The notes under the pieces are model-generated. The model was not told the DNA's origin, did no database searches, and saw nothing but the letters and a program-made list of their open reading frames with translations. Source: Trichoplax adhaerens (taxonomy: Eukaryota > Animalia > Placozoa). Taken from it: a stretch of DNA of 64,000 bases. A program made the translations under genes and the position numbers. The first letter of the stretch is position 1. Each line of letters starts with the position of its first letter. The stretch lies in NCBI RefSeq assembly GCF_000150275.1, contig NW_002060946.1, positions 6,540,936 through 6,604,935 on the forward strand, read 5' to 3'. Of this stretch, positions 3,177-45,974 are shown piece by piece.

Positions 3177-3749
3177 TTAATCTGGTAGAAAGCATTGTCG
3201 AACTCGATCGTAGACGGCATCAACATTATCGGAGCTGGTGACCGTTCGTACTAAGCCTTGTTTCTCATAGTGTTGAATGATTGGTACGGTATCATTTTTA
3301 TAACCATTTAAACGCTTTCGTAATGTTTCATCATTGTCATCTTTTCGACCACTTGTCTGGCTGCGTTTTTTCACTCTTTCAATACAAATATCAAAGGGAC
3401 AATCCATAAAGAGGACAAACTTGACATTGGCTTTGCCTTCCATGTGACTATTCCAACCATTTAAATTGTCGTGATTACGTGGAAAACCATCGACTAGAAA
3501 TTTCTGAACAGGACTAGCAATCATCGCCTTCTCGATCAATCGTACCGTAATGGCAACAGGTACAATCTCGCCATTTTTAATATAACGATCAATGAGATCA
3601 CCATCTGCTGATCCTGAGTTCCTTTCGGCTCTTAACAAATCGCCAGCAGATAAATGGACGTAACCAAATTCTTGGACAATTTTGCTACATTGAGTCCCTT
3701 TACCAGCACCCGGCCCACCTAAAACAAATACAACACTAGGTTTTGCCAT
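3177..3749 (-). CDS. CMPK1: UMP-CMP kinase (adenylate kinase family), intronless; first ATG at 3749
   Basis: MAKPSVVFVLGGPGAGKGTQC P-loop, HLSAGDLLRAER, GEIVPV, FLVDGFPRN, SGRKDDN motifs. Confidence 0.95.
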   Translation of the reverse strand: MAKPSVVFVLGGPGAGKGTQCSKIVQEFGYVHLSAGDLLRAERNSGSADGDLIDRYIKNGEIVPVAITVRLIEKAMIASPVQKFLVDGFPRNHDNLNGWNSHMEGKANVKFVLFMDCPFDICIERVKKRSQTSGRKDDNDETLRKRLNGYKNDTVPIIQHYEKQGLVRTVTSSDNVDAVYDRVRQCFLPD

Positions 3750-3940
3750 CAACGTTGTTGCTAGTAAGCGAATAGAATGACGAATTAAAGCCACGACCGA
3801 TATTGATTGATTGAATGGCTCCTTCTCAAAATAATGTCAGCTACAATCATCCAGCAGTTGCCGTTCGATTTCAAATTTAAAGGGCACCTTTTCAATTGAG
3901 CGATGACGACAACGTTCTAAGTAACGGATACGCCATCCAA

Positions 3941-4782
3941 TGTGATGCCAATGGAATGGATTCGGACGGAGTGGATTTTCCAGCTGTGCACTGTACACTG
4001 TACACTGTACACAGCTGGACGGTTCCTGCAATACTGTACTGTACTGTACACTGTACTGTACAGTACAGTGTGATGCCAATGGAATGGATTCGGACGGAGT
4101 ACTGTAGATTTTCCAGCTGTGCACTGTACACTGTACACTGTACCGTACACAACTGGACCGTTACTGCAGTACTGTGTACTGTACAGTGTACAGTACACTA
4201 CAAATCCAACCGTACTACAGTACAGTACAGTACAGTACAGTACAGTACAGTAACAGTACGCATTGTACGTACAGTACTTTGAGTTGCAAATTTTGACCCA
4301 CTACCAGTTGTATTGTACTGTACAGTACAGTACTGTAAATGAGTGCACAGTACATACTGTACACTGTACCGCATATCGGATGTCGTCGTAACAGCTGTTC
4401 AAGTATGGAAACAACGTGGCATCAGTACAGCACAATGGACTGAGTCATAGTACGCATACTCACTCACTCGCTATCATGGAAACCTTTCTTCAGTAAGTGT
4501 ACAGTACACTGAGTCACTGAGTACAGTACGTACAGTATCTGAGTTATCAGGGTTATTATACTGTACTGTACTGTACTGTACCGTACTGTACTGTACAGTA
4601 CAGTAGCTTAAATAGCAAAGCCTACTGTACTGTACTGTACTGTACACTACAGTATACTGTATACAGTACAGTACAGTGCACAGACGCGTCACGACACAGT
4701 GTACAGTACTGTACTGTACAGTACTGTAGTCTTCAATCCTGTTATCCTTTTCCTGATACTGTACAATGTACAGTACTGTACA
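3941..4782. repeat. (ACAGT/ACTGT)n pentamer-rich block containing a ~128-bp direct duplication (3941 and 4069)
   Basis: Long TACAG and CTGTA runs. TGTGATGCCAATGGAATGGATTCGGACGGAGT occurs at 3941 and 4069. The overlapping 'YSTVQ/CTV' ORFs are translations of this repeat. Confidence 0.9.
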
Positions 4783-5133
4783 TTTGAAAACTGGTATTGC
4801 TATCAATGAGTAAAGTCCGACTCACAGCGATTTAATTGTTATAGGGTAAGTATGATAGCTGCTCATTAAAATGGAGCTGCAAATTGAGCGCTAGTAGATA
4901 TACAGTAGATTGCAATTTTCAACTGTGGTAGTTTGTAGTGAGTCAGGATGTTTGCATGAAATCCCATATGCATGCAACACCAACTGATTCGTGTCTTTAG
5001 AAGACCGAAAAATTGATTGAACACTGTTAAATGCTATAAATGAGTAAGTCCGACTAACAACGATTTATTTATAAAAGTATGCAGATGATTTATCTTTCAA
5101 TAAAAGCACCTAATCTGCCCGAGGTAACACAAT

Positions 5134-11138: not shown

Positions 11139-11975
11139 ATGGCCAACGACAAGACATGTTATGATGAAATGGAAGATCAATCGTGTTCGCCACGTAAAAG
11201 GAATAAGACTACTACATCTAAACGAAAGAAACACAAATTGAAGTTAAGTCGCCATCATCGCCTGGAAACGTCCTCTTCAATTAGTTCAGAGTACACAGAC
11301 GAAGAAGTACCTTGTTGTAACGATAGGAGAAATAGCGATGATACTCGCAAAGATAAGACCGATAGCATTGATATCCTACCTAGTGCTGATCAACTTGTAG
11401 GCTTAGATTGTGAAATGGTTGGCGTTGGCAAAAGCAAGCGCAGTGCCTTAGCTCGTGTAAGTATCGTTAGCTATGATGGCGTCATTGTATACGATAAATA
11501 TGTCAGGCCTGATGAAGAAATAACAGACTATCGAACTCGTTGGAGTGGCATTCGTAAATCACATATGAAACAAGCTATATCAATGACGCAAGCTCGTCAG
11601 GAAGTTTTAACGATCCTTCGCGATAAAATTGTTATCGGCCATGGTCTTAAATTCGACTTTGAAGTCCTACAGTTTCAATTACCTTCTACTTCGAAAAGAG
11701 ACACAGCCAATTACCTTTGGCTCAGGCGGTTAGCTGACGTGCGGCCGTGTGTAACACCTTCGTTAAAAACTTTAGCAAGAATTATATTAAACAAAACTAT
11801 ACAAACTGGAGAACATTGTAGTGTAGAAGATGCTCGTACTGCAATGCAGTTGTACCGTTTGGTCAGCAATAAATGGGAATTAGATTTGAAACAGCACTCG
11901 AAATCCTTTATGGAGGATGAATATTGGCCAATGAAATTACTAAATCAAACTGGTTCTATTAACAATATTAATTAA
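11139..11975 (+). CDS. DEDDh 3'-5' exonuclease, ISG20L2/AEN/REXO4 family; intronless ORF, probable 5'UTR intron ~10739-11123
   Basis: LVGLDCEMVGVG..SALARVSIV..YDKYVRP..ITDYRTRWSGIR, IGHGLKFDF, RDTA, PSLKTLA..IQTGEHCSVEDARTAMQLY. Basic NLS-like N-terminus (PRKRNK, KRKKHK). Confidence 0.92.
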   Translation: MANDKTCYDEMEDQSCSPRKRNKTTTSKRKKHKLKLSRHHRLETSSSISSEYTDEEVPCCNDRRNSDDTRKDKTDSIDILPSADQLVGLDCEMVGVGKSKRSALARVSIVSYDGVIVYDKYVRPDEEITDYRTRWSGIRKSHMKQAISMTQARQEVLTILRDKIVIGHGLKFDFEVLQFQLPSTSKRDTANYLWLRRLADVRPCVTPSLKTLARIILNKTIQTGEHCSVEDARTAMQLYRLVSNKWELDLKQHSKSFMEDEYWPMKLLNQTGSINNIN

Positions 11976-21171: not shown

Positions 21172-24100
21172 ATGGCTATCAAAAATCTAAATTATTTTTA
21201 TTCCTTCCTCTTGTTGATGTTATTCTTGGTAAGTTAAAAATTCATCTCATTCTAATCATATAAGACTAGATCAACTTTAATTTATCAAATATTTAGTAAT
21301 CATAAGAAACTATCAACAATATCTGTGATTTTAGTAAAATCATCATAATAATTTTTTTAAATGATCCTATGATATGGACTAAGGTTTTATCCATTTTATT
21401 TTCTTCTCGGATTGAACTTACTCCTCTAGTCTTCTCATCATCGAGTTAATGGTATGAATATTTAATCCTTAATCTATCTTTAATAACTCTTTCATACGAT
21501 AATTATCCTTACTTAATTCTTGCTGTAATCGCAAAATCATTCCGCTATAGGGTCATAATGATTTTAATTAAAAACGATTTATAAGGCATTACCATGAAAT
21601 TAGTTATTCTAAATTGAACTCGATTCTGTTTGTTTTTATACTTGTTATTCAATTCTTAACAAGGATTACTTTCATCAAATATTTATAGCTTGTCAGTAAT
21701 GCTGGCATTAAATATTCCAGCATAACTGGCTTCGAAGATAGTTAAAATAATGCATGATTTTTGGCTATGTATTAACTTAAAATCTCGATTGTTTTGTTGC
21801 GATTCAATTTTATAGGAGCAGATTTTTTTATGATATCTCCCATTGTAGCTGGTTTTATTCAGTCTCCACAATATCCAAATCCTTATCCTGCAGGGCTGGA
21901 ATGTATTTGGAGTTTAACAGCTTCACCGAACTTCACAGTTATAGCCAAAATTTATGATTTCGATGTCAAACCTCGTGTAGAAGGAATTTGTTCAGATTAT
22001 CTTCGATTCTCAGCCGGTGTAGAACCTTTATCACAAAATGTCTCCATTTATTGTGGACAAACTTATCCCAATTCAATCCATTTCAACACACGAAACTTGT
22101 ACGTTGAATTCTCTACTCCAATTGCAGTAAATGTTAGTGGTTATCATGGATTTCGACTGGGATATTCGTTATGTAAGATTTCATGCTTTTGCTAAGGTTT
22201 ACTTTTAGACTCACACTATAGAGAATAGGTATAGCACTAGCAGTGGCTATTAGGATAACATAATCTGAATTTATATCTTATAGATATCCAGAGTAGATTG
22301 GTCAACTTTTCGTATATAGAAAGCTCGAGCCCATTTCGAACTCTATCTCTAAATAATGCCAATGTACCAGCTTCTAGACGCTATCCAATTCAAATCACAT
22401 GCGGCTATACCGGAATGCCCGTCTTAACAGGCACTAATTTTACTTGGTTTAATAATAACCAACAGTTAGGCACGATATCTGCAAATTCATCCACTATTAC
22501 CTCAGTCGGAGGATTTACACTAAATTTAAATTCAGATAATGTATCGACGACACTAACGATATTCAAGGAAACTTCATTAAATGTCTACAGCAATTATAGA
22601 TGCAATATTACTACCGTAGCCCAAACAATTTCCATACAAGGTAATTTAATCAAGATATCAGACTATCAACTACAGGTTCTAGGAGAAAATAGTATTTTGG
22701 AAGGCCAGACGATGCAATTAGAATGTACGGTAATATATACCCTGGGTAATGCAAGTGGATGGGAAACATTTACGTGGCTTCTCGATAATTCTCCGTTAAC
22801 AAGTTAGCGCCATGTTATATAGTTATTATTAGATTGTATTAAATAAAAGTATTAAGCAATTTGAAGATAACTAATTATATCATGTCATAATTTTATCATA
22901 ATATAAATTTATAACTTACAGATCAAGAAGCCAACATTCAGATCATCAGTAATGCTACCATATCAACGCTGATCCTAGTCAATATAACTCAATCAACATT
23001 TAATACCAGCAAGCCCGTTTTCACTTGTTCTTACGATGGAGACAACGGCATAAAATCTCAAAATCATACGGTAGAAATTTTGCAAGCCCCTGCGGCCCCT
23101 AAAACTTTGGATCTATTGGAAACTCTACTTCCATTTCAGACCGTTATTCCTTCGGGTGTAGTGGAAACATCTAATGGTCCATGGCAAACTCTAATTTTAA
23201 TTCAGTCTAGTGCTTCATCGAAAATGGCAGATACACTAGTATCTGAAGCTCCACTTGCATCGCCAACTATAGTTCCAGTCCAATCTATCGATCAATCACA
23301 AATTTCTAAATCATTGGTCGTTCCAATTCGACCGATCATTCCATCGGAAGTCGAACCGGAATTTCCAATTCGACCGATCATTCCATCGGAAATCGAACCG
23401 GAATTTCCATTTCCAACTATCATTCGATCGGAAACTGCGCCGCCATCACAAGCTTCAGTACCAGTAATACCTGCAAGTCGGAATCCTTCTCAGACTCCTG
23501 TTCTATCAGAGTCTACAAAGCCATCTGAAGTTCTATCGGAAACTTTAACTCCATTTCCAACAATTAGTCCATCCCAGGTTATTTTACCATCTGAAACCAA
23601 ACTTTCAATAGAAAGTATATCTATAACTACGGCTCCATCCGAGCCTTTGGTCCCACCTGGAACCTTTGTACCATCTCAGGCCCTTCTTTCATCGCAAACT
23701 CCATTTCTTTCTGAGATTCTGCTACCTTCTATAACGCTGTCACGGTCGGAAAATTCGGTCTTTTCTGAGACTCTAATTCCATCTCAAACGGTATCCTCTC
23801 CGGAAGGATTAGTTTCTTCTAAAAATTTATTTCCTTCCGAAACAATTATTCTATCCAGTGCCTTTGCTTTATCTCAAAGTTCAGTTTTATCCGCATCGTC
23901 AGCAAAATCTCGAACTACAGCTTTATCCCAATCTTCCACTTCGACTCAAAGCCTAGTTTCTTCTCTGTCCTCAACTTCCTCTCGATCTTCAATATCATCA
24001 ACTATTACAACTTCATCGCGATATTCCAATACGTTGCAGTCTATATTACCTTCCGAAGGTTCAGTTGCATCTCAATTATTAGTCTCATCAAATGCAGTAG

Positions 24101-27100
24101 ATCAACTTCAAACTTTATCTCAAACTCCGGTTGTATTTCCGTCTCCAATTCCATCCCAAGTTCCAGTAACATCTCAAGCTGCACCTCCATCTCCAACTTC
24201 AGTTCTATCTTTGCTTACGATTCCATCTCAAGTTCCAGCTACATCTCCAGCTGCTCCTTCATCTCAAACTCCAACTGTATCTATATCTTTGACTCCATCT
24301 CAAATTCCGATTACACCTCCTGTTCCATCTCCATCTCTGGCACCAGCACCATCTAGTAATAGGACATGCCCAAGTGAATTAGCAAATGGATACCTTTGGC
24401 CAGAAACATCTATTGGTATGGTGGCATTGGTTTCATGCCAACAATCTACCATCGGTTTGTATCTAAATTTCATCAACATCACCACAAAAATTATTTCCGT
24501 ACAAGTATATAAGGATTTAACACTTACTTCTCTATGCAGTAATATCTTTACGGATTTAAAAATTACTTAAGTCTTATGAAATAGTATATATTCCCTTCAT
24601 ATTAGAAAGCAAAATCATTACTATCTTAGTAACTTTGAGTCCCGAATTGATACTCCAGCTGTAGTCCGCATAAGCATATTATTCTTTTCATCACATAAAT
24701 CCAAATTTAAATGATCCTGTACGATTTCAGTAGTTTGTAATAGATCTATTCGAGTTGTTTGTGTAGTTTGAAATTAATTTAGCTTAAGCGTGTCATTTAC
24801 AGTACTTCCAGATGCAATATTCTTCTCTAATCTTATAGCAGTGGTGACTTTAATATCTTATTGAACTAATATTGTATGGACTATTTCGGAAAATACCAGC
24901 TGAGCATCTTTTTTACGTTGAGGCTGAAAACAGTTCTAGACTCGGTATTCATTAATTAGTTCCCCAATTAAGAATTTGCACAAACAGATTATTCTTCTCA
25001 TCGTATAATTCCAAGATAAATAATCCTGTACGATATCAATAATTTATGATAGATCTATTTGAATTGTTTGATTAGTTTGAAAATCAATTTAGCTTTCTGG
25101 CATTAACATCACATACAGATCCTACATCCTTCTCTAATCTGATAGCAGATAAAAATTTAACATCTTGTTGAACTAATATTGTATGGACTATTTCAGGAAA
25201 CGCTAGCCGTGCATGCATTTTCGTTGAGGCTGAAAATAGGTCTAGATGGGATCAAGTATCTACTAATCAGTGCCCTAGTCAGAGCTTCATTTCTTTGCAA
25301 CAAGAGGTAGTGTACATCATTTCGATCTATGTGATTGATGTAATGGCATTAAAACGCTATCTTAAGTAGATAACAGTGTCTATTTTTTCTTTAAATCCCA
25401 AATTACACTTCAATAGGCATCATTATTAAACGATAGCAGTAATAACATAACCGACATATTAAGTAAATTACAAAATATCACTGAAACGCCAGCTAATAAA
25501 AGCCTAAGTGTTGGTGATATCTTGGTAGCGAATTCGATCTTGGATACAGTGGCTAACGTTAGCAAAAATCAAACAGTTTCTGTCAGGGATCTTTATGTAA
25601 GAATACGGAAAAAATGATATATCCTTATTTTGATATATTATTAGTCTTTTTAATGAATCTAGACCTTTGAATTGTGCGTTTTCCAGCGATTGAGGTCTTG
25701 TAAATAATCTTGTAAAATATTTTATTTGTAACTGGTAACAGGAATTTGTTCGGACAGGAAGCAATTTAATCGATTTAAAAAATCGAAATCAGTGGAATAT
25801 TATACAACAGGTAAAAGAATAATTGCTAAAGAATAAAATTTTGAAATTTTTCGTTGTAACAATTAAGTTTCTTTCCACTTGTAATTTAAAAACGACAATC
25901 ATTAAATCTCGTTAATATTACGCTGTTAACACTGTATTGCTTATTTATCATTTGCTCTTTATTCAAAGACGAGACCAGGAACAACAGAATTGAGTCGAAA
26001 CTTGGACCAATTTAGTAGCCAAGTCAGCGTTAATCCTAACCAAACCATAATTGTAGCAGCCAATAATATTGGTATATTTATAAGTGATTGATTTCCCCGA
26101 TTTATAGCATTTATTAATTCATCAGATCGTATATTTTACTAATTTTACTTGCAAATTTATCTACAAAGTATGCCAGTACTTGAGATACCATGAAATAGAA
26201 GTTATATATCAATAAGATATTTGTTTAAATTGTACTTCTTAAAAGAGTTAATTTATTATTTTTCATAGTTGCTATAAGCATTTCTATCTAAATAAGTTAT
26301 CTATCTCTTCTGGTATTAAGTACACTTATGGCATAGTATGTTTTATCTCTCCTAGTAATATAAAAAATTTAAACAAGACTAGTATATTGAATGACTGGCA
26401 ATCTCCAAGACCTGCTTGATAATATGAAATGCCTAAATGAATCATTATTATTTGTTATAGTCATGGAGGTTTATGGTTTTAGCCCACAACTGAACCGAAA
26501 TTATCAATTTCCCGATAGAGTTTTTAGTCTGGCTAATTCACCATCGAACGACATTATTTTCCAGACCAATAATTCACAGAATTGGTTAAGAGGCAATAAA
26601 ATCAAACTACCAGCCTCTACATTTCAAAGTATGATTTAGCTACATTGTACATTTTTAGGATAAAGTAATATTAATTATTTTACTACATGAATTGAACGGG
26701 ATTTCTTTATCATATAGGCTATAATACAAATATTAAGGTGGTCAGTTTCATGTACAGAACGTTAAGTGAGCTCTTGCCTGATGAGATTGATCAAAGTATA
26801 AGGTAAAATCTCCCTCTATTTCATTCGTCGTTTCTGTGTTTATTAACTAATTATTTACAGTCATATTCGATCAAATTCTATTCTATCATTATTTATTTAT
26901 CTTTAAACATTATTTCGTAGTGCATCTTCAAGAAATTGGATTCCGCAAACATTGGTAATTTCTACCTCTCTTTATCCGCCCCTTACCGCAGCATTATTAG
27001 AACCACTTGAATATATATTGGAAAAACTATCGAATGAAACGGTAGCTTTATTTGCGCCATTATTAAAATTATTTTAATTAAGTCGATTTGACACTGCTTA

Positions 27101-30100
27101 TGCAATTATACGAAGAGATGCACGTGAAGGTATTAACACATTAAATTCATATATAGTCCTATTTATTTTCTCATTTACAGCTAATATACAATCAACAATT
27201 ATACGCAGTTTCTAACAATTTTAACTGTTCATTCTGGAATTATTCTATAAGGTTCGTGTGTTCTATTCACGGAATAATTCTTTTTCACGATAGAAATATC
27301 ATCTACGCTCCTATTCGCCATGAAGTGTCTGTTAATTTTTTTTCTTGGCATTAATATAATGTAGAACTATCCATAGTGGGGCTTGGTCAAATCAAGGATG
27401 TCGTAGTAAATCCTTCAATTCTACTCATATTGTCTGCCAGTGTGATCATTTAACTAATTTCGCTGTATTAATACGTCTATCGGAAAGAAACGTAAGTATT
27501 ATGAATGTCTTAGAATACTGTTGACTAGATTATCGATTTAAAAACACGATCTGCACCAATACGAAATGGGGATTAGCGAACTATACAAAACGGACGTAAT
27601 TAACGACTTTGAATGAAAAAATATGATCGGTAAACTAATTCTATTTTATGTTGATTTAACAGCTTAGTGCGCCTATCCAACTTTCTCTTGAAATAATAAC
27701 TTATGTTGGCTGCGGCCTTTCAGTGGCTGGATTATCTGTTACTATTGCTGTTTACGTCTTTTTATGGAAGTGAGATATATATATGTATAAGCAAATCATC
27801 TCAATATCAATTCTGTACTGATCCAAAATTTTCTGATGAAATTTGCAATAAATTATATGACGAATCCAAAATTATCGCAATTAATCACCTCAACATTATC
27901 AATAATGATAATTATTTAAAAGATTAATTTTTTTATGTATTAATTAATAACAGATTTTTGAAAAATGCAACGCATAAAATACATTTAAACCTATTTATTT
28001 GGCTCTTACTCTCCAATCTGATATTAATGTTCGTCGACTTAGCAAAAAATGTCAAGGTATTCCATACATCATTAATTGTAATTGATAGTTAACAGCCGAT
28101 TTAGGTGTTAAATAATTAATAATATTTCGATCTAACTTTATTACCGTACGTTTATTCGAATATAAATTGTCGATATGCCTTAAACTATTAAGTATTTAGT
28201 ATTTTATCAGCTTCTAATTTATAACTAATCAGTAATATTATATATTATTCTATTCATTCCCGTTAACCTATACCACGGCATAAAATCCTACTTTAGTAGT
28301 CTTGGATAATTTTAAGTTTCTATTTATAGTCCTTAATAGACATCACAGCTCCTCACCTACTTGGTGATAGACTATTCTATCTATCTCTATCTATCTAATT
28401 ATTTTATCTAATAGATAAATAATATAAATCTTGCTAGTGATATTTTTTGGATAATCCTATCCTAATATATTCCCTTTTTAATTGATTAATAATTATAATG
28501 TAACAGTTTATCTTCTTTGCAATACCATACTCGTATATTATCCATTTTGACTTTATTGCTAGTAGCTACTGGTATTTATTCTCATTTATCTGCCCTCTAT
28601 TTTATTCATTCAAGTTTTATGACACTGTTGCAGGTACTGAAACGTTTTCAATCAAAAAGTAACCAATACATCAACTTCTTTTTTTGATTTTATAGCCATT
28701 GTGCGCTGCTTTTGCTTGCTTATTACATTTTACGCTCTTAACCACTTTCTCTTGGATGCTAATTGAGGGCATTCACATCTACTTTATCTTGGTAAAAGTT
28801 TTCGACGTCCGTGAAAAATTTCGTTATTATCACGCAGCATCCATAGGTATATAATTAAGTGCTTACTTAGGATATAAAGCAATTTATCAATCTAAATTCC
28901 CCTTTCTAAAAACTACAACCTTAATGAGATATTCTAGGATTAATTATGCTTAATATTTCCGATAATCACTATTTATAATTCTTATTTTTCTAAAGGCTTT
29001 TCAGCTATAGTTGCAATTCTTACTGCGGCTATTACTAGTGGCGTTAGAGGAGTAGAATTTTATTTAAGCTCGCAAGGGTTAGAATAGCATTAATTTATAA
29101 AATAATATAGCAGCATGTGATTGCTATAATAATCTTTTCAGAACTATCACTAATAGTTGTATTTATTTTTACAGTTGCTGGTTATCAGCTCAAAATTGGG
29201 TTATTCTTGCATTCATCATTCCATTTATAATTATTTTTGTGGTATGAATACCTTCATTTATCTTCGTAATTTTATTTCAATTATGAATAGTTAAATTGTC
29301 AAGATATAAGGATTTTCTACTTCACATTTGTTACTTTGATTGGCTAAAACGATTATTTTGGGTTTAAATTATTAAATGCCAACAGCAAGTAACGTAATAT
29401 ACTGGCGATATTGTTCAACTGCTTTTTACTTATTTTGGTAATGATGAGTATAAATAAATGAGCATGTACCCAAAAGTAATCGCAGTATATTATTTTTTAT
29501 AGGCCAATGTAATATTTTGTGGTTTGGCCATCCATACCATGCTCCATACGAAAAAAGTCGCAGAGGAAGCTAAAGATTTACAAAAAGCCAGGTAAATTAA
29601 GCGATAGAATTTATCATAAATCACATAATTGCTTTAAATGCTAATTTATTCAAAAAAATTTTTCATATTAGAATTGCTTTACGAGGTCTAATTATTCTAA
29701 CGCCAATTCTTGGCTTAACTTGGTCTTTCGGTTGCGCTCTCATGGTTTCTGACAGCGTTGTACTTCAATATTTATTTGCTATTACTAACTCAATTCAGGT
29801 AGACGAAATCGAATGTAACACATAGCTGACGTTTAATAACCTACCGCAAGTTAATCAGATTTATAAGTTATTATTCTGTAAAAGCTAAAAAATGATGTAT
29901 AACATTTTAATCTTAGGGTGTCTATATCTTTTTCACTCACTGCCTTTTAAGCAAAAAGGTAAGATCTCAAATTCATATTGACTAAAAGTTATCTAGTTCA
30001 ATTAGAATCTAAATAAGTCATTATAAAATATAGCCCGAAATATAAACCTAGTAAATCCAGGCTTAAAATTTTTACCGTCACTTCAGACGTAATACTTTCT

Positions 30101-31998
30101 TTTTAACTTTAGTCGACGATCTCACGTGTATTGAGGCATTAATCCTTACTGGTTTCGAAAATACGTATTCTATACTACTATTAACTTTTAAAGCTTTAGC
30201 TAAATAGCGTTATTACGTCTAGTTCTGCATGTGTTAGTAATATATCACATCAGCCGAGTATTATAAATCGAATCGCTAATATTGATCTTTAGATGATCCA
30301 GGAATATTTATTTTATCAATACGTTATCAACTATTTGCAGATTCTAAAAATGCTGTCCTCATTTCTTTATTAGTAATTACGAATATTGTCAGCAGCACCT
30401 AAAATGCTGACCATATAAAATCTCGCGTATAGAATAATTACTCCCAAAACGAACCTAAAAATATTATTTAAAATTAAAATACTGAAATTACTGCTATATA
30501 ATTTTTTGTCACAGATCAAAGAAGCCTACAATAAATCGAAAAGAAAAGGAAGGAGGTTCATGCTCAGTAAGAAAAAAATCAGGTATATTGGATGTCTTCG
30601 ACGTGAAATGATTTTATGCTTATTAAGATTGGCCTATCGGCCTATTTATTCCTTTGAAAGATTGAAATTAATAACTTCAATTTATCTCCTTATTATAGCC
30701 ATAAAAAATATAACGCCCAAGAATCTTCACATTCACAATCAAGGCCTAGGTATGAAATAATGAGATCTCTGACGTGGAGTAACTCACTAAAAGCAAGATC
30801 TACTTGATTTATTTATTTATATACGTTATTTCATCTTCATGGCGGTAACATTTATTTAGCTTTAGTTCTTGCTTATTATCTGGTGAACAATTACGAGACG
30901 TAAATACTTTAATTTAGTATGGAGAATACTCAAAAAATAATATGCAGCTTAATTTTCATATTAAATAAATATGAATCTGTTATTATTAGACTATTTGTAC
31001 CCTTAACGACTCTTCTGAATAGATATTGTCTCAACAAACTAACATAGACTGCATCATCTGCGTAATTTAGACTCGAACATGATCGAGATTGTAACGAATT
31101 TTAATATCACGTACATGTTGTTGCTAAAAGTAACCGTATTATTTGTAATTAGTATATATGGTTCGCTTTGGAGTGATTCTATTAATGTCGAATTTTTGTA
31201 GCTATATAGCAGATTATCAATTCTAGATTTTAAGATCCTTTACGCTATTTCCTTCTTAACATTGACGGCAAAACTAGATTTTTATTGTAATTAATTTAGC
31301 TCATTAAATGCATGATAAAACAAGCGGATTCAATTCAAATTTTTTATTATTCTAGTGTCAGCAGCCCTAAATTCAGTAAAATGACTACCTTGGAAAGCTA
31401 CAATTTGGATTCTACGCAACCCGTTGTATTAACTGCAATGAAAGTTTATTCCGACTATGAAAGTGAAGACATTTCATCTTTGCAACCGACCGCAATTGCT
31501 GTTTCTGTCGCTGATGCAAAGATTCCACAACGTGATGATCATTTACAAGAAAATTACCGCTACGGCATCATCAATCATACCTATGATGACTCCGACATTC
31601 AACCACAACAAGACACAATTACTGAAAAATGCGCCGCGAATAATCACGATAAAGTGGATGATGTTAAAGATTCGCTAGAAGGAACTGACCATCACGGCAT
31701 CATCAATCAAACTTTCGAGGATTCTGAAATTCAGCCGCAAGTGGATGCAATTACAGAAAAATCGTTATCAAATAATCAAGATCATTTTCACAACGTATCA
31801 TCTTCACCGCCATATACAAATTCTACTTCCGCTCCTGATGTTGATATCCGGCCCAATCGTGAGGACCAGTTGAAAAATAGCGACCATCAACGTTTACTTA
31901 ATCACGATTTGAAATATCAACCAGAAGCGAATCCTGACAATACAACAGCGAATTATGTCAGTAAAACGGATATTTTCGATGAAGAGATGTTACTGTAG
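21172..31998 (+). CDS. Adhesion GPCR 1: signal - CUB - 2 Ig-like - ~420-aa Ser/Pro/Thr stalk - HRM - GAIN/GPS - 7TM - long acidic tail; multi-exon
   Basis: [23 protein letters not shown] (~21849-22171); Ig exon ~22284-22802; large exon 22922-24454 ending [24 protein letters not shown]; GPS CSFWNY...AWSNQGC...[13 protein letters not shown] (27447-27455); TM1 [12 protein letters not shown]; [10 protein letters not shown]; CWLS; [12 protein letters not shown]; [13 protein letters not shown]; last exon to stop 31998. The 5'-most small exons are uncertain. Confidence 0.9.
24678..25290 (+). repeat. ~310-bp intronic tandem duplication carrying a dead copy of the HRM exon
   Basis: 24678-24987 aligns with 24988-25290. 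The first copy has acceptor tttcGG (24888) against the live tttcAG (25196), plus indels. Confidence 0.85.
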
Positions 31999-36431: not shown

Positions 36432-39400
36432 ATGCATTTCAATGTATTTACCAAAGTTTGTCCTCTTTTCTTTTTCATCATCTACAACTTCAACCTTGTA
36501 AGTTACTAATGCTAGTAAAATATTTATATCATTCAATATTAAAAGATTCTTTAAATACGGAAAGGCATTAAAATATTACCAATATCAGTAGAATTTTCTC
36601 GAGAAAAAACGTTACTTTTAAATATTATGCCGTTTAATTAGATAATAGTAACTTTATAACCTATAATATCAATTTCTACCTCCAATTGTTAACATCGGAA
36701 ATCATATTTTAATCTGATATTTTTTGATTGTATGATTATTTCCAAGTGGTTAATTTTCGATATACCTGGAAAAATTGCAATGCAAGGTAGGAAAAATACT
36801 GTATTCTGTTATTGTAATAATTGAACGATATTTGAAGTCATGCTATTCTTCTAGAGAAAATATTTTGCATCGATCTAAGCTATAAAATCAAACCAGTTTC
36901 TTTGTTATATCCTTTTAGATTGTGGTGATTATATGCCAGCTTTTCTGTATACTGGCTATATTATATCACCAAATTATCCTTATAACTATTCCTCACCACT
37001 GTTTTGCTCTTGGTCAGTGGGAAGTGGACAGAATGGAACTGCTATCGTTAAAGTAATCGATTTTAACCTTCGTCCACGAGTAGAAGGAGTTTGTAGCGAT
37101 TCTGTAAGCTTTTCGTTCGGTGTAGAACCTGATTTTAGAGGTTTACCATACTGTGGTCGTACTTATCCTCAGAATGTCTACTTTCAAAGTCGGAACATAC
37201 ATATTATATTTACGACACAAAGAGGTTCACCTGGAAATTATACTGGCTTCAAAATGAGTTATTCTTTATGTAAGTAAAATAATTTAATCTCTGATACGAC
37301 GATTACAAGTCCAAATCTATGCTAAGAAGCTTTGCTAAAATTGAAGTATTCACATTTTTTATAGATGTAAATCAAAATAACACTGTATTTACCTATCAAG
37401 ACCCAATTTCAAATCCCATTCGTGAAATATCGTTAAACAACCAAAGCTTACGAATTACCGGACGTAATAAAATCCAATTAACTTGCGGCTATAAAAATTT
37501 ACCCGTACTCAATGGCACGAAATTTCAGTGGTATCTTAATAATCAAACCCTAGGCCCTGTTATTTCTCCAAGCCAGCCCACTTTCAACCACTCCAATTTC
37601 TATCGTCTTCAACTGAGTCAGTATCAAAACATGGTAATCTTGCAAGTGTTTCCCAGCACAGAATTCAAATTTGACGGCCATTATGGGTGTAGTATCTTTA
37701 CTCCTGCTCAAGATATATCCCTTGGAGGAAATTTGTTGATGATATCAAACTATAGAGTCAACATAAAAGGAGATTATACGGTCATTGCAGGTAATACATT
37801 GCAATTGCAATGCACAGTCACTTATACGTCGGGCATAGCTAGTGGTTCTGAAAATTTCATATGGTATCGATCACAAATTCCGATCGTATCAGGTTAGTAG
37901 TCCAATTTAATTTTAAAATATAGCTGGCAAGTTTAATTATTGGAAGCTTATCTAATTTGTGCACTTGTATTGAATCTATGATGAGATTTATTTTAATGTC
38001 GGTATCCGGCATTGGAGCAACCCTTCATAGATGGGTTTAAATTCGCAATTGAAGATAGTATAAATACTGTAATATAATTTGATATCGACATTCCAGTATT
38101 CTAGATTAATTTAATCCGAGTACTTGTATTGAATACAAGATAAAATTTATTTTAATGGCGATATCAGATTAACCCTTCAATGATGGGTTTAATTGGCAAT
38201 TGAAGATAGTACAATAGTTATGCATAATGCAGTTCGATACTGACATTCTAGTATTCAGTTCAACTTATTAGTAAATTATAACAGGCAACAATACTCCACA
38301 GTGCTTTAAATTCGTAATTGAAGGCAGTATAAATAGTCATTGCAAATAATATAGCTTGATATTGATATTCTAATGTTTTAGTTCCATTTAATGGTAAACT
38401 GTAGCCCGCGATAATACTTGATGTAAGCTAATTTAATCTATGTGCTTGTATTGAATATATGATGAGATTTATTTCAATGTCAGCATCGGATTAATCCTTT
38501 AATGATGGATTTAATTGGCAATTGAAGATAGTATAAATAGTTACACATAATAGGGTCTTTATATTGATATTCGAATATCAATCCTTTATACAGGTGCCAA
38601 TTCAAATGTTCAAATTGAAAGACAAGGCTCAGAATCCATACTAACTCTAAGGAATATACAGCGACAATCTTCTAATACAAGTCTAACACATTTTACTTGT
38701 AGTTATGATGGCGTTATGGGTATAAAGGAGGCCCATCATACTATAGAAATTTTTCCAGCTCAGCCGCAACCATCTACATGTCCGAAACAGCAACAAAATG
38801 ACTTTTCATGGCCAGAAACACCCGTTGATGCTGTTGCCGTAATTCCTTGCGGACAGTTATCGTCAGGTTTGTAACAGAAAATTTAACTTATTTTATTGCT
38901 TTAGTCAGTTTCAAGAGTACATTATTTATGATGCCCGCCTTCTAAGTTACTGGAGTAAAGCTAGCTACTAATTCAATATTTCATTTTTTGAATTTCTTTA
39001 TTTCTATATCACCTTGATTTAGGCAATGTTACTCGTGCTTGCTTGCTGGATACTGTGGAACAGCTGCCTAGATGGGGAAGCGTTTCCAGTATTAATTGCG
39101 TTAGTCAACCTTTTATTTCCATTCAACAGCAGGTTAGTCAAGATAAACAGCCTAATGTTCATTCAGTGTAATCATCAACTTAATCAAAAGTTAACAAAAA
39201 CTAATTTACTACGTCAATCTCCTAAATTTTATGTGATAACTAGGCTTCTAATTTAACTGATAAGAATAATAATGCTACAGAAGTCCTGACTAGGCTACAA
39301 AATATCACAAATACTCCATCTAATCAGAGCCTGACAGGAGGAGATATTTTAGTTGCCAATTCTATATTAGAAAAAGTAGCTAATATAAGCGATGAACTAT

Positions 39401-42400
39401 CTATCCAAATTAAAGACCTTTACGTGAGTCTATCATTAGATTGAAAATAGAATAACTGTACTACAGAAGCCATTCATTAATTATTATAAGATAGCTATTT
39501 CTGAACGACTAGTTTCAAATGTAGAACTGATTAATGCGGTTAGAGTTCACTAAACCTTCATATATCCCCATTAAATAGATTTGATATATTTAAATTTATA
39601 ACTATCATTTAGGAATTTGTGAGAACTGGAAGTAACTTGATAGAGAAAAAAAACAGAGATCAGTGGATCGAGATACAAAAGGTAGAGATCTCAAAAATAG
39701 ATTTGATTTTAAGTTGCTGATGGCAAAAATATAGTATCATTGCATAGCGCATTATTTGACGATCATTAAAAGTTCTAACCCTTAATTTATGAATTTTACG
39801 CTTTTATATTAATAAGATCAATTATATACTAATAGACCAAACCAGGAACAACGGAACTAGCTCAAAACTTAGATCGATATGGTAGTTTAGTTGGATTAAG
39901 CAATGAGACAATCATTGTGGCAGCAGATAATATAGGTATATCAATTTCAAAAACATATCCTGATATTTCATTGACTTGATACTTTATTCATAAAGTCATC
40001 AGTAGGATAGCCTGCATAGGAAGCAATTTGTCTAGCTCCTAGCATAACAAAATGCTTTTCTAAAACATTTCAATTTCTGATTCTATTAAAACATGGATTT
40101 AGCTAGCATTCTACGATTAATTTCATATTTATAAGCAATAAATTGCACCATTTCCAACTAGGAAGTGTGGATAGAAGCTGAAAATAATTCTTATTTACCA
40201 ATAGTTATGGAAATAAGCGCCCTTAGTACCGAAACAGAACAGCCATATCAATTTCCTAGCGAATTCACTAATAGAGTAGATCAGCCGGCAACCAATATTG
40301 TCCTTCAAACTAATAGTTCTAGGCGATGGCTCAAGGGGAACCAGATTAATTTGCCTCCAACTGTATTTCAAAGTAATTTTATCCAAGCAAAGAATAGGCT
40401 GGATACTATATTCCATAAAATACTTGAGTAAACGTTGAGTTAATTCATTAATATCAATAATTTTATTTCATTCCTAAATGTAGGCTATGATGTTTCAACT
40501 ACAATTAAAATAGTAAGCTTCATTTATAAAACTTTAAACGAACTTTTACCCGAACAAGTCGACCAGACTCTTAAGTAAGCTAACTTAGCGATCTATTTGA
40601 TATCGATAATATTATAATCATTATTTGCAAATGGAATTTCTTTCAATACTATGAAGACAGATGCGATTCCCCTGATTTCTAATATAAATTATAGATTATG
40701 TTTCAATTCTAAATAGAACATAGAAAGATTAATAATTTTATTGAAATATTTTTATAGAACTAACTCGAGCCGATGGATTCCACAAACAGTAGTAATCTCG
40801 ACATCACTTTATCCGCCACTCAATAAAAAGCTACTTGAGCCAATTGACTATACTTTGCAAAAAGTGTCAAACAGCGAGGTCATTCCATTGCATAAAAATT
40901 TAATTCTGTTACCTGTTTTGAGTTAAAAAATGATTGCTATAATGTTATTTCTGTCTAGTGCTTCAACTTGCATACATTTGCTAAATTAAATTAATATTCA
41001 TCTTGATTATAGCTTTTATTCAATCGCGAATTATATAAAGTTACTGACGAATTCAATTGCTCATTCTGGAATTATACCATCAAGTACATGATTTGCTACT
41101 CAAAACGCTTTAAACTAGCAGCTGTTTCTTTGCACTAAAGTTGTTTATTTTAATCAAAATATCTTAAGGACTATCCACACGGGAGCTTGGTCTAGACTAG
41201 GATGTCGAACGAAATCCTCAAACGCCAGCCACATAGTTTGTGAATGCGATCATTTAACGAATTTTGCAGTACTCCTAAGATTATCAGAAAGAAATGTAAG
41301 CTCTTCTAAGCTAATTTTTAACGAAATGTACTTTGTAATTACTTTTAATGTATTCCTTGTTGAAATAAAGATGCATATGGTCATAAGACTAATACCAATT
41401 AATTTCAATTTTTCTTCATTTCTTGAAACAGCTTACCCAACCTATCCTGCTCTCACTTGAAATAATTACATATGTTGGTTGTGGCTTTTCTGTTGTTGGA
41501 TTGAGCTCCACCTTAGTTATCTACTCTGTATTATGGAAGTAATTATTCTGGATATTCATTAACTTCTGCTAATATCGATGATAGATAAAATTAGTCCTAT
41601 ACCTATTAAATACTGTTTTATTAATAAATGAAACTGTTGCTTTTCCTACTTGTAAAACTATTAGATTCTTAAAAAATCCAACCAACAAAATTCATATGAA
41701 TTTATTCGCTTGGCTATTAGTTGCTAACTTAATCATCATGTTTGTGGATTTAGCAAAGCATATCAAGGTAATTTATATGACGATTATTGAACTCAGTAAA
41801 ATTTCAATTATTTTCGCTATCAAAAGCATGATTGCAACGATCAAGACATATATTTTCAATATGTAATCTATCTAATATAATAGGTTCTATGTACTATCCT
41901 GGCTTCCGTACTCCATTTCTCACTACTGGCTACGTTTATGTGGATGTTGGTAGAAGGCATACATATTTACCTTGTGCTTATAAAAGTTTTTGATGTCAAT
42001 GAAAAATTCCTGTACTACCAATTAGCATCAATAGGTCTGTTTTATTCAAACAGATATAGAATAGGTCAATTTACCTTACAGAAATATAAGTAAATTTAAT
42101 GATGATGTTATCGTTTATTGGTACCAGGTGTTCCCGCTTTGATAGCTGGCTTAACCGCTGCGATTACGTGTGGAGCTGCAGGAATGGAATATTATTTAAG
42201 TTCACAAGGGTCCGACTAATATTAATATGTCTAGTATCATACTCGTGATTCCTACAATTCTAAATACAAGGAAGCCTTGAAAATAAAACCGTTGAACTTA
42301 GGACAGCCTATTTTTACTCTTCCTTTTAATTTATATTATTCTTTCAATTTTCTATAGTTGCTGGTTATCAGCTACAAATTGGGTTATTCTCGCATTTGTC

Positions 42401-45228
42401 ATTCCATTTGTAATCATCTTTGTAGTAAGTTTGTAATCAATAGTTATCAAAATATTACATCTTTAACAAAGTTCCAGGATATATAGCTATAAATACTAAA
42501 GCTACTGTATTGCATATATTAAATTAATTTAGCAAATGTAAGATTCCCAACTAAAGGTCTCTTAAATCTTGTAGACAAACATTGTATTTTGTGGTATGGC
42601 AATTTACACTATGCTCAATACACAAAAAATAGCTCAGGAGACCGGAGATCTGCAGAAAACAAAGTTTGTTTTAATAGCTTTCTATACTAAAATTGTTTCA
42701 TACAAATGCTAGATAAACAAAGTGAGGATCTCTTTTTCATATGATTAATATCATTCTTAAGAATCGCGTTGAGAGGCTTGAGTATTTTAGCCCCCATCCT
42801 AGGTTTAACCTGGTCTTTTGGTTGCATTCTTATGATATCTGATAATGTTGTGATACAATATCTATTTGCAATTACTAATTCGGTACAGGTAGGTATAATT
42901 TATAACAGAAGATCATTCTAAATATTCGCATTTACTAACAGCAAGGATTTATTATTATTAATTCTAACCTTAGGGACTATACATCTTCCTTGCTTACTGC
43001 GCCTTCAGTCAAAAGGTAAGCGATAAAAATTTATGACTCATGTTACTAATCCAAATCGTCTGCAATACTTAACAGCATAATTTGATTCTATCAATCATTC
43101 ATTTAAATAAACGTTTTGTTATGTTAATCATCAGAATAGCGGCCAGTTAATTTGTATCTCACTAAATAATGTAGACCTAAATTTAAATGACCAGAAATTC
43201 TATCAAGAAGCAATAATTATAATTTCTTGTACAATTCATGAAGAAATAACGAGCGCTGTTTGTTATATTTTTTATTACAAATAAAGTAAAATTTCATTGA
43301 ATATTTCAATAATAACTTAACATTGACCAGAAACTTATCAATAATCGTTAATAATAATATTATTGGGATTCTATTCTCCGCTTGGATTCGTAATAGTTTT
43401 AAAATTTAAAAATTTATTATTCCCTTTGCTTTTAGTTCAAGTTTAGCAGTAGCCTAGAATTTCTATCCAGTCATAGCGATATAAGTTATGATTGCAATCC
43501 TAACCTTCAAAATTTAAAAATTGATTGAGAAGGTTACTTTGCTTACTCAGTAACTACCATAGAATAATTGCTTTGCAGCAATTTCCAAAGTGAAATTTTA
43601 AAGGATGTAGGTAATATTGCTGATAGAGTTCTATTAATTGAACTAATAGGTTAAAGAGGCCTATGGTAAATACAAGAAACAGGGAAAAAGACATTTTATA
43701 ATGAAAGAAAAGCCAAGGTAACAAAAGTCGCTACTCTTGATATATATTTTACCTTTATCGAAGGGTACGAAATACAATTTTTGCTATAAAAGCGCCAGAA
43801 TCAAAAAGTTAATGCCTTTCTTTACATAATTTTTTTAAATATTGTTCCGTAGCAACACGAAAGAAAAATCGAATGATTCCTCTTATCCAAGTTCCAAAGT
43901 TGGGTATGTTAGCTATCAAATTGAGTAATGATTGCTCTGTTGGTCTTTGATAAAACAAAGGGGACATGATCAGATTTTAAAATGGCACGTAATAAATATC
44001 TTTAAAGTGAAAACTTTGCAAGGAAGCTATATATATAAATTCCTATCTGTTTTGAAGCAGATTACGAATCATGTTCAGTTAGTGTTTTAGTATTGGCGGT
44101 AGGCTATATTGAAAGATCACTACGTACGAATAATCCTACATGCTTAGTTATTATTTTATTACAAAATTTATTTTGTATGAGTTCTACATCGAATATAACA
44201 CAGAACAGCATTAAGTTAATTAAGACACTGTTATTGATTGTCTTCCTACTATGCTGCATATAATAAATTCAAAGCAATTTCTGACTCTTTAGCGTACATA
44301 CACATAAGAGTATCCCTGTAATCGCGGAGAGCAGCAGTAAAACTTTGCGAGACAATATTCTATAAGTAAATTCTAATTATAAATACCTATAGTAAAGAAG
44401 CTTAGAAAATTAAATTGCGATGTATACCATCTGACATGTTAGGAATGCAAGAGTATTTGCAAATTTTCAAGTTATAAATCATTACATAGCAGTGATAAAT
44501 CTAGTATATTTAAATTCGAAAATAGTGTAGCAACGAGAAATGGAACTAAATATTTAGCTTCGTCGGAAGCATTTATGCTCTAGTCACCACCAACAGATAT
44601 TTATTTTATTTTGAATTAAGATTTTATTCTATTTTCATCTAATACTAGCAACGTAAAAACAGAAAAAACATCTATAATAACCAGTACAGACGTCGAAAAA
44701 TCTGTAAACGTAACATCAGCGGAACAAATGAAACAGGAAAATATAAACCCTGAATCGTGTGAAGAAAATTTCGTCGTGCTATCAGTTCCTGAAGTTTCAG
44801 TATTACCAGAAACGAACGATAGCCTAGCGGATACTGATAGTCGTGCCGATAGCGAACTAGATCAAAAACCTCTAAGTGGTGGAGATCCAATAGAGCGCAA
44901 GAATGAAGAAGAAGTATTAAAAAAGCAAAGTTATTCAGATCAAGAAAATCTCTCTTTAGAAGATCAGCAAGAGTTACTTCGTATTAAGATTAGAGGTTTA
45001 CATCCTCAAGCATCGACTGATGAAATTAGGGAATATTTTAAAAGATATGGCAAAATTGAAAGGATTGGTAGCATCAGTAAACATCAGGCTAATCAGTCCG
45101 ATGATGAAAACGAAGATACTGTGGAAACATACGTAGTATACCACGAAAAATCTGCAATCGATAGTATCTTCAGCGAAACTAAAGATACTCACATCATTCA
45201 TGATCGTCAAGTCTATCTGCAATTGTAA
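36432..45228 (+). CDS. Adhesion GPCR 2: signal - CUB - 2 Ig-like - HRM - GAIN/GPS - 7TM - tail ending in an RRM-like domain; multi-exon paralog of GPCR 1
   Basis: Exons 36432-36497, 36747-36786, then 36919 onward (DCGDY..GYIISPNYPYNY CUB); 38594-38866 (Ig end + HRM); [16 protein letters not shown] at 41251; 7TM exons colinear with GPCR 1; tail exons 43650-43717, 43853-43903, 44649-45228 all in phase. Confidence 0.9.
37950..38580. repeat. About four degenerate ~150-160-bp tandem repeats in a GPCR 2 intron
   Basis: Recurrent CTTGTATTGAAT...GGGTTTAATTGGCAATTGAAGATAGTATAAATA...GATATTGACATTC near 37960, 38120, 38310 (partial) and 38440. Confidence 0.8.
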
Positions 45229-45924: not shown

Positions 45925-45974
45925 NNNNNNNNNNNNNNNNNNNNNNNNNNNNNNNNNNNNNNNNNNNNNNNNNN
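45925..45974. other. Assembly gap (50 N)
   Basis: Run of n characters. Confidence 1.

Follow-up and report, generated by a model that had tools for sequence, protein, structure and literature searches.

The adhesion G protein-coupled receptor (GPCR) gene TRIADDRAFT_55944 of the placozoan Trichoplax adhaerens encodes a receptor whose cytoplasmic tail very probably ends in a single domain with the fold of an RNA recognition motif (RRM). The gene lies on the plus strand, at 36732-45228, of the stretch of DNA analysed here (the window), which comprises 64,000 nucleotides of contig NW_002060946.1 in assembly GCF_000150275.1 (positions 6,540,936 to 6,604,935 of the forward strand); unless a contig is named, coordinates below are positions in the window. 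That the tail exons form the true 3' end of this adhesion GPCR gene has strong support; we favour, with some reserve, a reading in which the single RRM tail acts as a receptor-tethered, non-canonical docking module. The gene models themselves are already public; the RRM is undescribed in the papers that we found and is not listed by Pfam.

The receptor is best read from the Trichoplax sp. H2 protein P0016, a complete model of 1236 residues named 'Adhesion G protein-coupled receptor L3' ('ADGRL3'), whose 24 coding exons all map colinearly on the window at 36732-45225. The T. adhaerens model (P0001; XP_002111672.1, UniProt B3RTJ2, 963 residues) omits several exons, among them those of the GPS, the first transmembrane helix (TM1) and TM5-6. 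Pfam applied to P0016 gave the domain order CUB (38.0 bits), Ig_3 (24.7 bits), HRM (23.0 bits), GAIN (87.2 bits) with GPS (53.1 bits), then the seven-transmembrane region (7TM; 7tm_2, 133.5 bits) and the cytoplasmic tail. The 7tm_2 core is full, with the match spanning positions 2-250 of the 250 in the profile, and its TM1-TM7 exons occupy 41432-43015 on the plus strand. The GAIN domain and GPS stand directly before TM1, and 11 residues of the GPS, legible in the exon at 41170-41295, include an HL/T site; autoproteolysis there and tethered-agonist signalling are putative. The DNA around these exons is AT-rich (GC content about 30%) with many short GT-AG introns.

The central observation concerns the last 84 residues of the protein (44974-45225, plus strand), which stop where the fourth strand of the fold stops. 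AlphaFold2, run on an alignment of four placozoan sequences, returned a model with a mean predicted local confidence (pLDDT) of 75.3 and a predicted TM-score (pTM) of 0.62, in which the elements E10-17, H23-30, E36-42, E58-64, H67-75, E81-83 and E86-91 follow the RRM topology (beta1, alpha1, beta2, beta3, alpha2, beta4) and include the beta4 hairpin. Foldseek against the PDB gave 119 matches at E<=0.001, and the matches listed are RRM proteins at probability 1.0 and a TM-score of about 0.7 (hnRNP A1 UP1, Musashi-2, AUF1, U1-70K, TDP-43 and PABPN1). Superposition on the first RRM of Musashi-2 with VIA-align gave a Z score of 11.7 and a root-mean-square deviation of 2.2 A over 77 residues. Sequence comparison points the same way, with 44 weak phmmer matches to PDB sequences, nearly all of them RRMs of hnRNP A1, hnRNP A2/B1, hnRNP D, Musashi and PUF60, and with a four-sequence placozoan profile matching hnRNP A2/B1 from beta1 to alpha2 (E 1.1e-6). 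When phmmer was run on the whole library, matches 3-13 covered the RRM stretch, and all six of those scanned with Pfam proved to be multi-RRM proteins; neighbours in the ESM Atlas, which we treat as a lead only, were mostly RRM clusters with scores below 0.9.

Pfam itself sits on the border. Against a gathering cut-off of 20.7 bits, RRM_1 scored 23.1 bits on the last 87 residues and 20.8 bits on the whole last exon, the match covering positions 2-37 of the 70 in the profile; RRM_7 scored 18.6 bits over positions 5-80 of 94. The precomputed Pfam lists of P0001 and P0016 carry no RRM, because the RRM_1 score falls under the cut-off when the full-length protein is the query. An earlier sequence-only reading of the window had proposed a C-terminal RRM, and the profile, AlphaFold2 and Foldseek checks all returned that fold, with RRM_1 borderline. 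Taken as a structural prediction, the assignment of the RRM fold to the last 84 residues is solid.

Whether this domain belongs to the receptor turns on the exons that follow TM7. The TM7 exon (42974-43015, plus strand) is 42 nucleotides long and ends in phase 0 on a full codon before a GTAAGC donor. It is followed on the same strand by a basic juxtamembrane exon of 68 nucleotides at 43650-43717 (AG before it, ending in phase 2, donor GTAACA), a serine-rich micro-exon of 51 nucleotides at 43853-43903 (AG before it, phase 2 to phase 2, donor GTATGT) and the last coding exon at 44649-45228, with its AG acceptor at 44647-44648, 192 codons and a TAA stop at 45226-45228. By sequence reading, the three short introns after TM7 are thus of the GT-AG type and leave the exons in one frame. 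The open frame that contains the last exon runs to 202 codons (44620-45225), and it is not a chance frame, because by our estimate a stop is expected about once every 12 codons at 30% GC.

Two database proteins supply the evidence for a joined protein, the exons having been searched singly. The last exon matches residues 772-963 of P0001 (exhaustive phmmer, the exon alone as query) and residues 1045-1236 of P0016 (word-indexed search) with 100% identity, and both proteins run from TM7 through the 68-nucleotide and 51-nucleotide exons into the last exon over identical junctions. The H2 models come from evidence-based prediction that drew on transcriptomes assembled both de novo and with genome guidance (PMC6057997), a pipeline that does not by itself prove read support for the receptor gene.

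A second line of evidence comes from two relatives, each about 40% identical, that carry the same tail: P0002/P0015, found in ENA assemblies, and P0014, found in a Logan assembly. In Trichoplax the first in-frame ATG of the last exon is residue 27 (44728), with no ATG between the upstream stop and that position, and the relatives align from residue 10 of the exon onward. Residues 10-26, the 17 residues that precede the ATG, are 41-47% identical to P0002/P0014, which is on a par with the RRM (43-45%) and above the middle of the linker (30-39%); their alignment score was reached by 8 of 5000 shuffles in one case and by 241 of 5000 in the other. Conservation upstream of the first ATG indicates that these residues are coding, and splicing into 44649 is therefore required.

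The competing view would make the join an artefact of gene modelling, with the RRM exon a separate small gene downstream and the receptor ending earlier, for example by read-through after 43717. It draws on the records of P0002 and P0014 as stand-alone open reading frames (ORFs) of 196-199 residues with a Met at the same aligned position, on the neighbouring paralog, whose public model has a short rather than a long terminal exon, and on a join that is backed by models and conservation rather than by reads. Yet the aligned position is Ile in Trichoplax, where a separate gene would find no in-frame ATG before 44728, and the 17 residues ahead of that codon show the same degree of conservation as the RRM itself. 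The join is present in two public models of separate origin, the acceptor at 44647-44648 is a perfect AG in the right phase, and the Met starts of the relatives would be what an ORF caller is expected to place on a terminal exon in genomic contigs. We regard such an artefact as improbable. The sequence-only reading had claimed that the exons at 43650-43717, 43853-43903 and 44649-45228 splice in frame by GT-AG and that the ORF at 44728 is the last exon of the receptor rather than a gene of its own; the borders are as it described, and the two public models, the conserved residues before the ATG and the paralog exon series uphold both statements.

One further property of these exons may be recorded here. 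If the donor after the 68-nucleotide exon (43716-43721) is unused, the frame continues as AGG TAA, an immediate stop. Retention of the intron at 43717 would give a receptor ending 23 residues past TM7, lacking the acidic tail and the RRM, which may represent a short isoform.

Between the micro-exon and the RRM, the last exon encodes an acidic linker of about 105 residues (44650-44973, plus strand) that is predicted to be disordered, with pLDDT mostly below 55; in a model of the whole exon, residues 1-106 are disordered and residues 109-192 folded. The exon as a whole holds 22 Lys/Arg against 41 Asp/Glu. Within the linker lies a short motif of 25 residues, LSVP ... P ... SLADTxSR ... S (44779-44853, plus strand), defined by invariant columns among columns 44-68 of the four-sequence alignment A1. 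Though not predicted to fold (pLDDT about 50), it is a candidate for partner binding or for regulation. The relatives retain both this motif and the RRM without frame breaks, and the T. adhaerens and H2 tails are 100% identical. In alignment A2, 30 columns are invariant in four sequences, all of them from the end of the linker through the RRM. A scan of metagenome contigs with the tail alignment gave no match.

What the domain binds is a harder question, and here the residues that canonical RRMs use for RNA are informative. At RNP2, LFVGGI of hnRNP A2/B1 aligns with IKIRGL (IKISGL in the relatives), whose second position is an invariant Lys rather than an aromatic residue. At RNP1, RGFGFVTF aligns with TVETYVVY (VVDVYVIF in the relatives), where position 3 is Glu or Asp and position 5 an invariant Tyr in the four sequences. 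The RNP consensus has three exposed stacking aromatics and the tail RRM keeps one of them; judged from these alignments, loss of the other two predates the split of the sampled lineages. The domain carries 12 Lys/Arg against 16 Asp/Glu (net charge -4), and its beta2-beta3 loop is long, acidic and of low confidence in the model. An acidic net charge, together with the replacement of two of the three stacking aromatics throughout the relatives, makes RNA binding by the tail RRM doubtful. Here too the sequence-only reading proves sound, having noted that the RNP aromatics are partly lost and the beta2-beta3 loop acidic, and having cautioned that the domain may not bind RNA: the replacements recur in all four sequences, alongside the net negative charge.

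We favour a docking role because a single stacking aromatic is left, this state is fixed in all relatives, and an acidic domain sits on a very acidic tail. Under this proposal the ligand of the tail RRM would be a protein or a peptide, with weak binding of nucleic acid at most, and the domain would bring a cytoplasmic factor to the receptor or keep it there; it would not be a classical sequence-specific binder of single-stranded RNA. Several facts weigh against the reading as a whole. The RNP1 Tyr and the surface Lys of beta1 are invariant and are compatible with RNA binding. RRM_1 matches over the first half of its profile only, at 17.8 and 17.3 bits in the full-length proteins, below the cut-off, and the structure model was built on four sequences only. 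Use of the junctions is backed by gene models and conservation, and P0002 and P0014 are known only as last-exon ORFs with a Met start.

Some of these facts lend themselves to the opposite interpretation, in which the tail RRM is a working RNA binder. The receptor would then anchor specific mRNAs or small RNAs to the plasma membrane or shed a fragment able to bind RNA, and local handling of RNA would be coupled to adhesion or to mechanical signals. The fold and the best sequence matches are those of true RNA binders (hnRNP A1, hnRNP A2/B1, Musashi and AUF1), and the invariant Tyr at RNP1 position 5 and Lys of beta1 would suit such a function. Other Trichoplax loci, taken up below, encode RRM pairs at 55.0 and 48.6 bits with a more canonical RNP2, for example IYVGGL, which suggests a family-wide, RNA-linked function. 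This has to be set against the replacement of two of the three stacking aromatics in all four sequences, one of them by an acidic residue, against the charge of -4 on a strongly acidic tail, and against the acidic beta2-beta3 loop. On this balance we consider a working RNA binder possible though unlikely, and retain the docking module as the preferred reading.

The closest 7TM paralogs are P0017, P0018 and P0019 (71%, 65% and 62% identity in the 7TM region), and the RRM is absent from all three. P0017 is the product of TRIADDRAFT_55942, the neighbouring gene, whose exons at 29917-29958 (42 nucleotides), 30515-30582 (68 nucleotides) and 30699-30749 (51 nucleotides) equal those of the studied receptor in length and phase. 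This neighbour has two candidate last exons, a short one at about 30858-30917, used in the public model P0017, and a long ORF at 31312-31998. The long ORF gave no Pfam match, and BLASTP of it against the studied tail was not significant (E 0.77, 31327-31995). The earlier claim that the neighbouring paralog shares the layout of the studied gene therefore stands for the 42/68/51-nucleotide series, whereas the long last exon falls away in the public model.

Other features of this neighbour may be noted. Its long ORF encodes 228 residues with an internal repeat of two 15-residue units, and within the span of the gene lies an open frame of 496 residues (23080-24570), rich in Ser, Thr and Pro and mucin-like, with no Pfam match. 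The public model of the neighbour is 270 residues longer than that of the studied receptor.

Beyond the window, searches of the Trichoplax assembly (105.6 Mb, 1414 contigs) returned only the gene's own locus, whether the query was the RRM or the four-sequence profile; one weak additional match (L002) was rejected as a chance match, being a low-complexity ORF that reads as non-RRM. Crossing own-genome matches to RRM_1 with those to 7tm_2 brought out further loci with RRMs. In the first (L004, contig C1408:1729000-1737000, minus strand), exons for TM3-TM7 and a basic juxtamembrane exon precede a last ORF of 455 residues with two RRMs (RRM_1, 55.0 bits). The second (L005, contig C1414:11137000-11144500, plus strand) has 7TM exons followed by an ORF of 336 residues with two RRMs (48.6 bits). 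The TM6 exons of both end in a QYxFAIxNSxQ motif, as in the studied gene. A third locus (L006, contig C1414:7113500-7116500, minus strand) has an ORF of 180 residues with two RRMs directly 3' of a low-complexity ORF of 512 residues; the nearest 7tm_2 match, on the same strand, lies some 20 kb upstream, and its pairing with these RRMs is only a candidate.

In BLASTP the studied RRM matches the RRMs of these loci at E 7e-6 to 1e-3, no better than it matches hnRNPs, and a ranking of Trichoplax RRM exons by the tail profile placed tail and ordinary RRMs alike at 10-18 bits, intron-split RRMs matching only in part. The studied gene has a single, more divergent RRM and belongs to a receptor subfamily other than that of the two-RRM loci. 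The RRM tails of Trichoplax receptors may reflect one ancient fusion with later losses, or exon shuffling between tails.

With this family picture in hand, one might ask whether the studied RRM is a decaying, functionless remnant of an earlier RNA-binding tail. Its RNP motifs are degenerate, it is one RRM where the related loci have two, and the three closest paralogs have none. Decay would, however, be hard to reconcile with an RRM that is better conserved among relatives than the mid-linker and whose frame is intact, with the 30 invariant columns of alignment A2 across four sequences, with a confidently predicted fold, or with the complete identity of the T. adhaerens and H2 tails. We hold it to be very improbable. 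A bolder possibility is a placozoan set of RRM-tailed adhesion GPCRs, with the studied gene as its single-RRM member, in which RNA or an RNA-protein particle is held at the receptor. We offer this as speculation and would not expect it to hold. If it did, adhesion or mechanical activation would directly control local capture, translation or release of mRNA; to our knowledge a receptor-to-RNA route of this kind is undescribed for any GPCR.

Elsewhere in the window, a single-exon gene of the adenylate or UMP-CMP kinase type lies at 3177-3794 on the minus strand (Pfam ADK, 153.7 bits), and an ORF of 278 residues at 11139-11975 on the plus strand has a basic, Ser-rich N-terminus followed by an RNase_T-type exonuclease domain (65.8 bits). 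At 3837-4806, overlapping ORFs of TVQYS/YSTVQ-like repeats on both strands look like a tandem DNA repeat and not like genes. On the 3' side of the receptor, about 700 nucleotides beyond its stop codon, an assembly gap of 50 N (45925-45974) leaves the 3' untranslated region and the sequence beyond not fully legible. A scan for poly(A) signals gave 434 matches against 385 expected in this AT-rich DNA and was uninformative.

Adhesion GPCRs are a large class of receptors, and little is understood of their intracellular tails. Because a folded RRM tail is conserved from one placozoan lineage to another and is found in several Trichoplax genes, it offers a natural experiment in how a surface receptor becomes wired to a new partner in the cytoplasm, be it protein or RNA. 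Should the tail RRM bind RNA, sensing at the cell surface would be linked to RNA handling without a signalling cascade; should it bind protein, it would be a clean case of an RRM turned docking module. Domain databases miss it, its full-length score lying just under the Pfam cut-off. In the literature, placozoan adhesion GPCRs with unusual extracellular domains, namely C-type lectin domains, have been described (PMC6321704), and the term 'RNA recognition', the sole RRM term looked for, is absent from that paper. Our literature search, an incomplete one by titles and abstracts, found no paper on an RRM fold on an adhesion GPCR tail, and a search by gene accessions found nothing.

Comparison with known systems places the receptor in familiar company up to its tail. 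With latrophilin-like adhesion GPCRs (class B2) it has in common the HRM, the GAIN domain with GPS, the full 7tm_2 core and the presence of extracellular adhesion domains; its N-terminal CUB and Ig domains are not part of the latrophilin set, and the name ADGRL3 is automatic. The tails known from adhesion GPCRs are for the most part disordered and carry short motifs, PDZ ligands among them. The two-RRM loci of Trichoplax (L004 and L005) resemble the studied gene in their 7tm_2 exons, their short exons and a long last exon on the same strand that ends in RRM folds; they differ in having two RRMs with clear Pfam scores where the studied gene has one divergent RRM. The best matches to the tail RRM in both sequence and structure are the RRMs of hnRNP A/B, hnRNP D/AUF1 and Musashi. 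With this group it shares the beta1 pattern IxIxGL, ExxxxYFxxYGxI in helix 1 and HxIxxxxV in the beta4 hairpin. There, however, the RRMs come as tandem pairs within soluble nuclear proteins, whereas here a single RRM ends a membrane receptor, with Lys at RNP2, Glu or Asp at RNP1 position 3, a net acidic charge and a long acidic beta2-beta3 loop. Protein-binding RRM variants (UHM and pseudo-RRM) combine degenerate RNP motifs with acidic character and take peptide rather than RNA ligands. Membership of the UHM group was considered and set aside, as its hallmark Arg-x-Phe after helix 2 is missing in all four sequences, the loop reading ETKDTH (QENxxH in the relatives); it is in degenerate RNP motifs and acidity that the tail RRM resembles these protein-binding variants.

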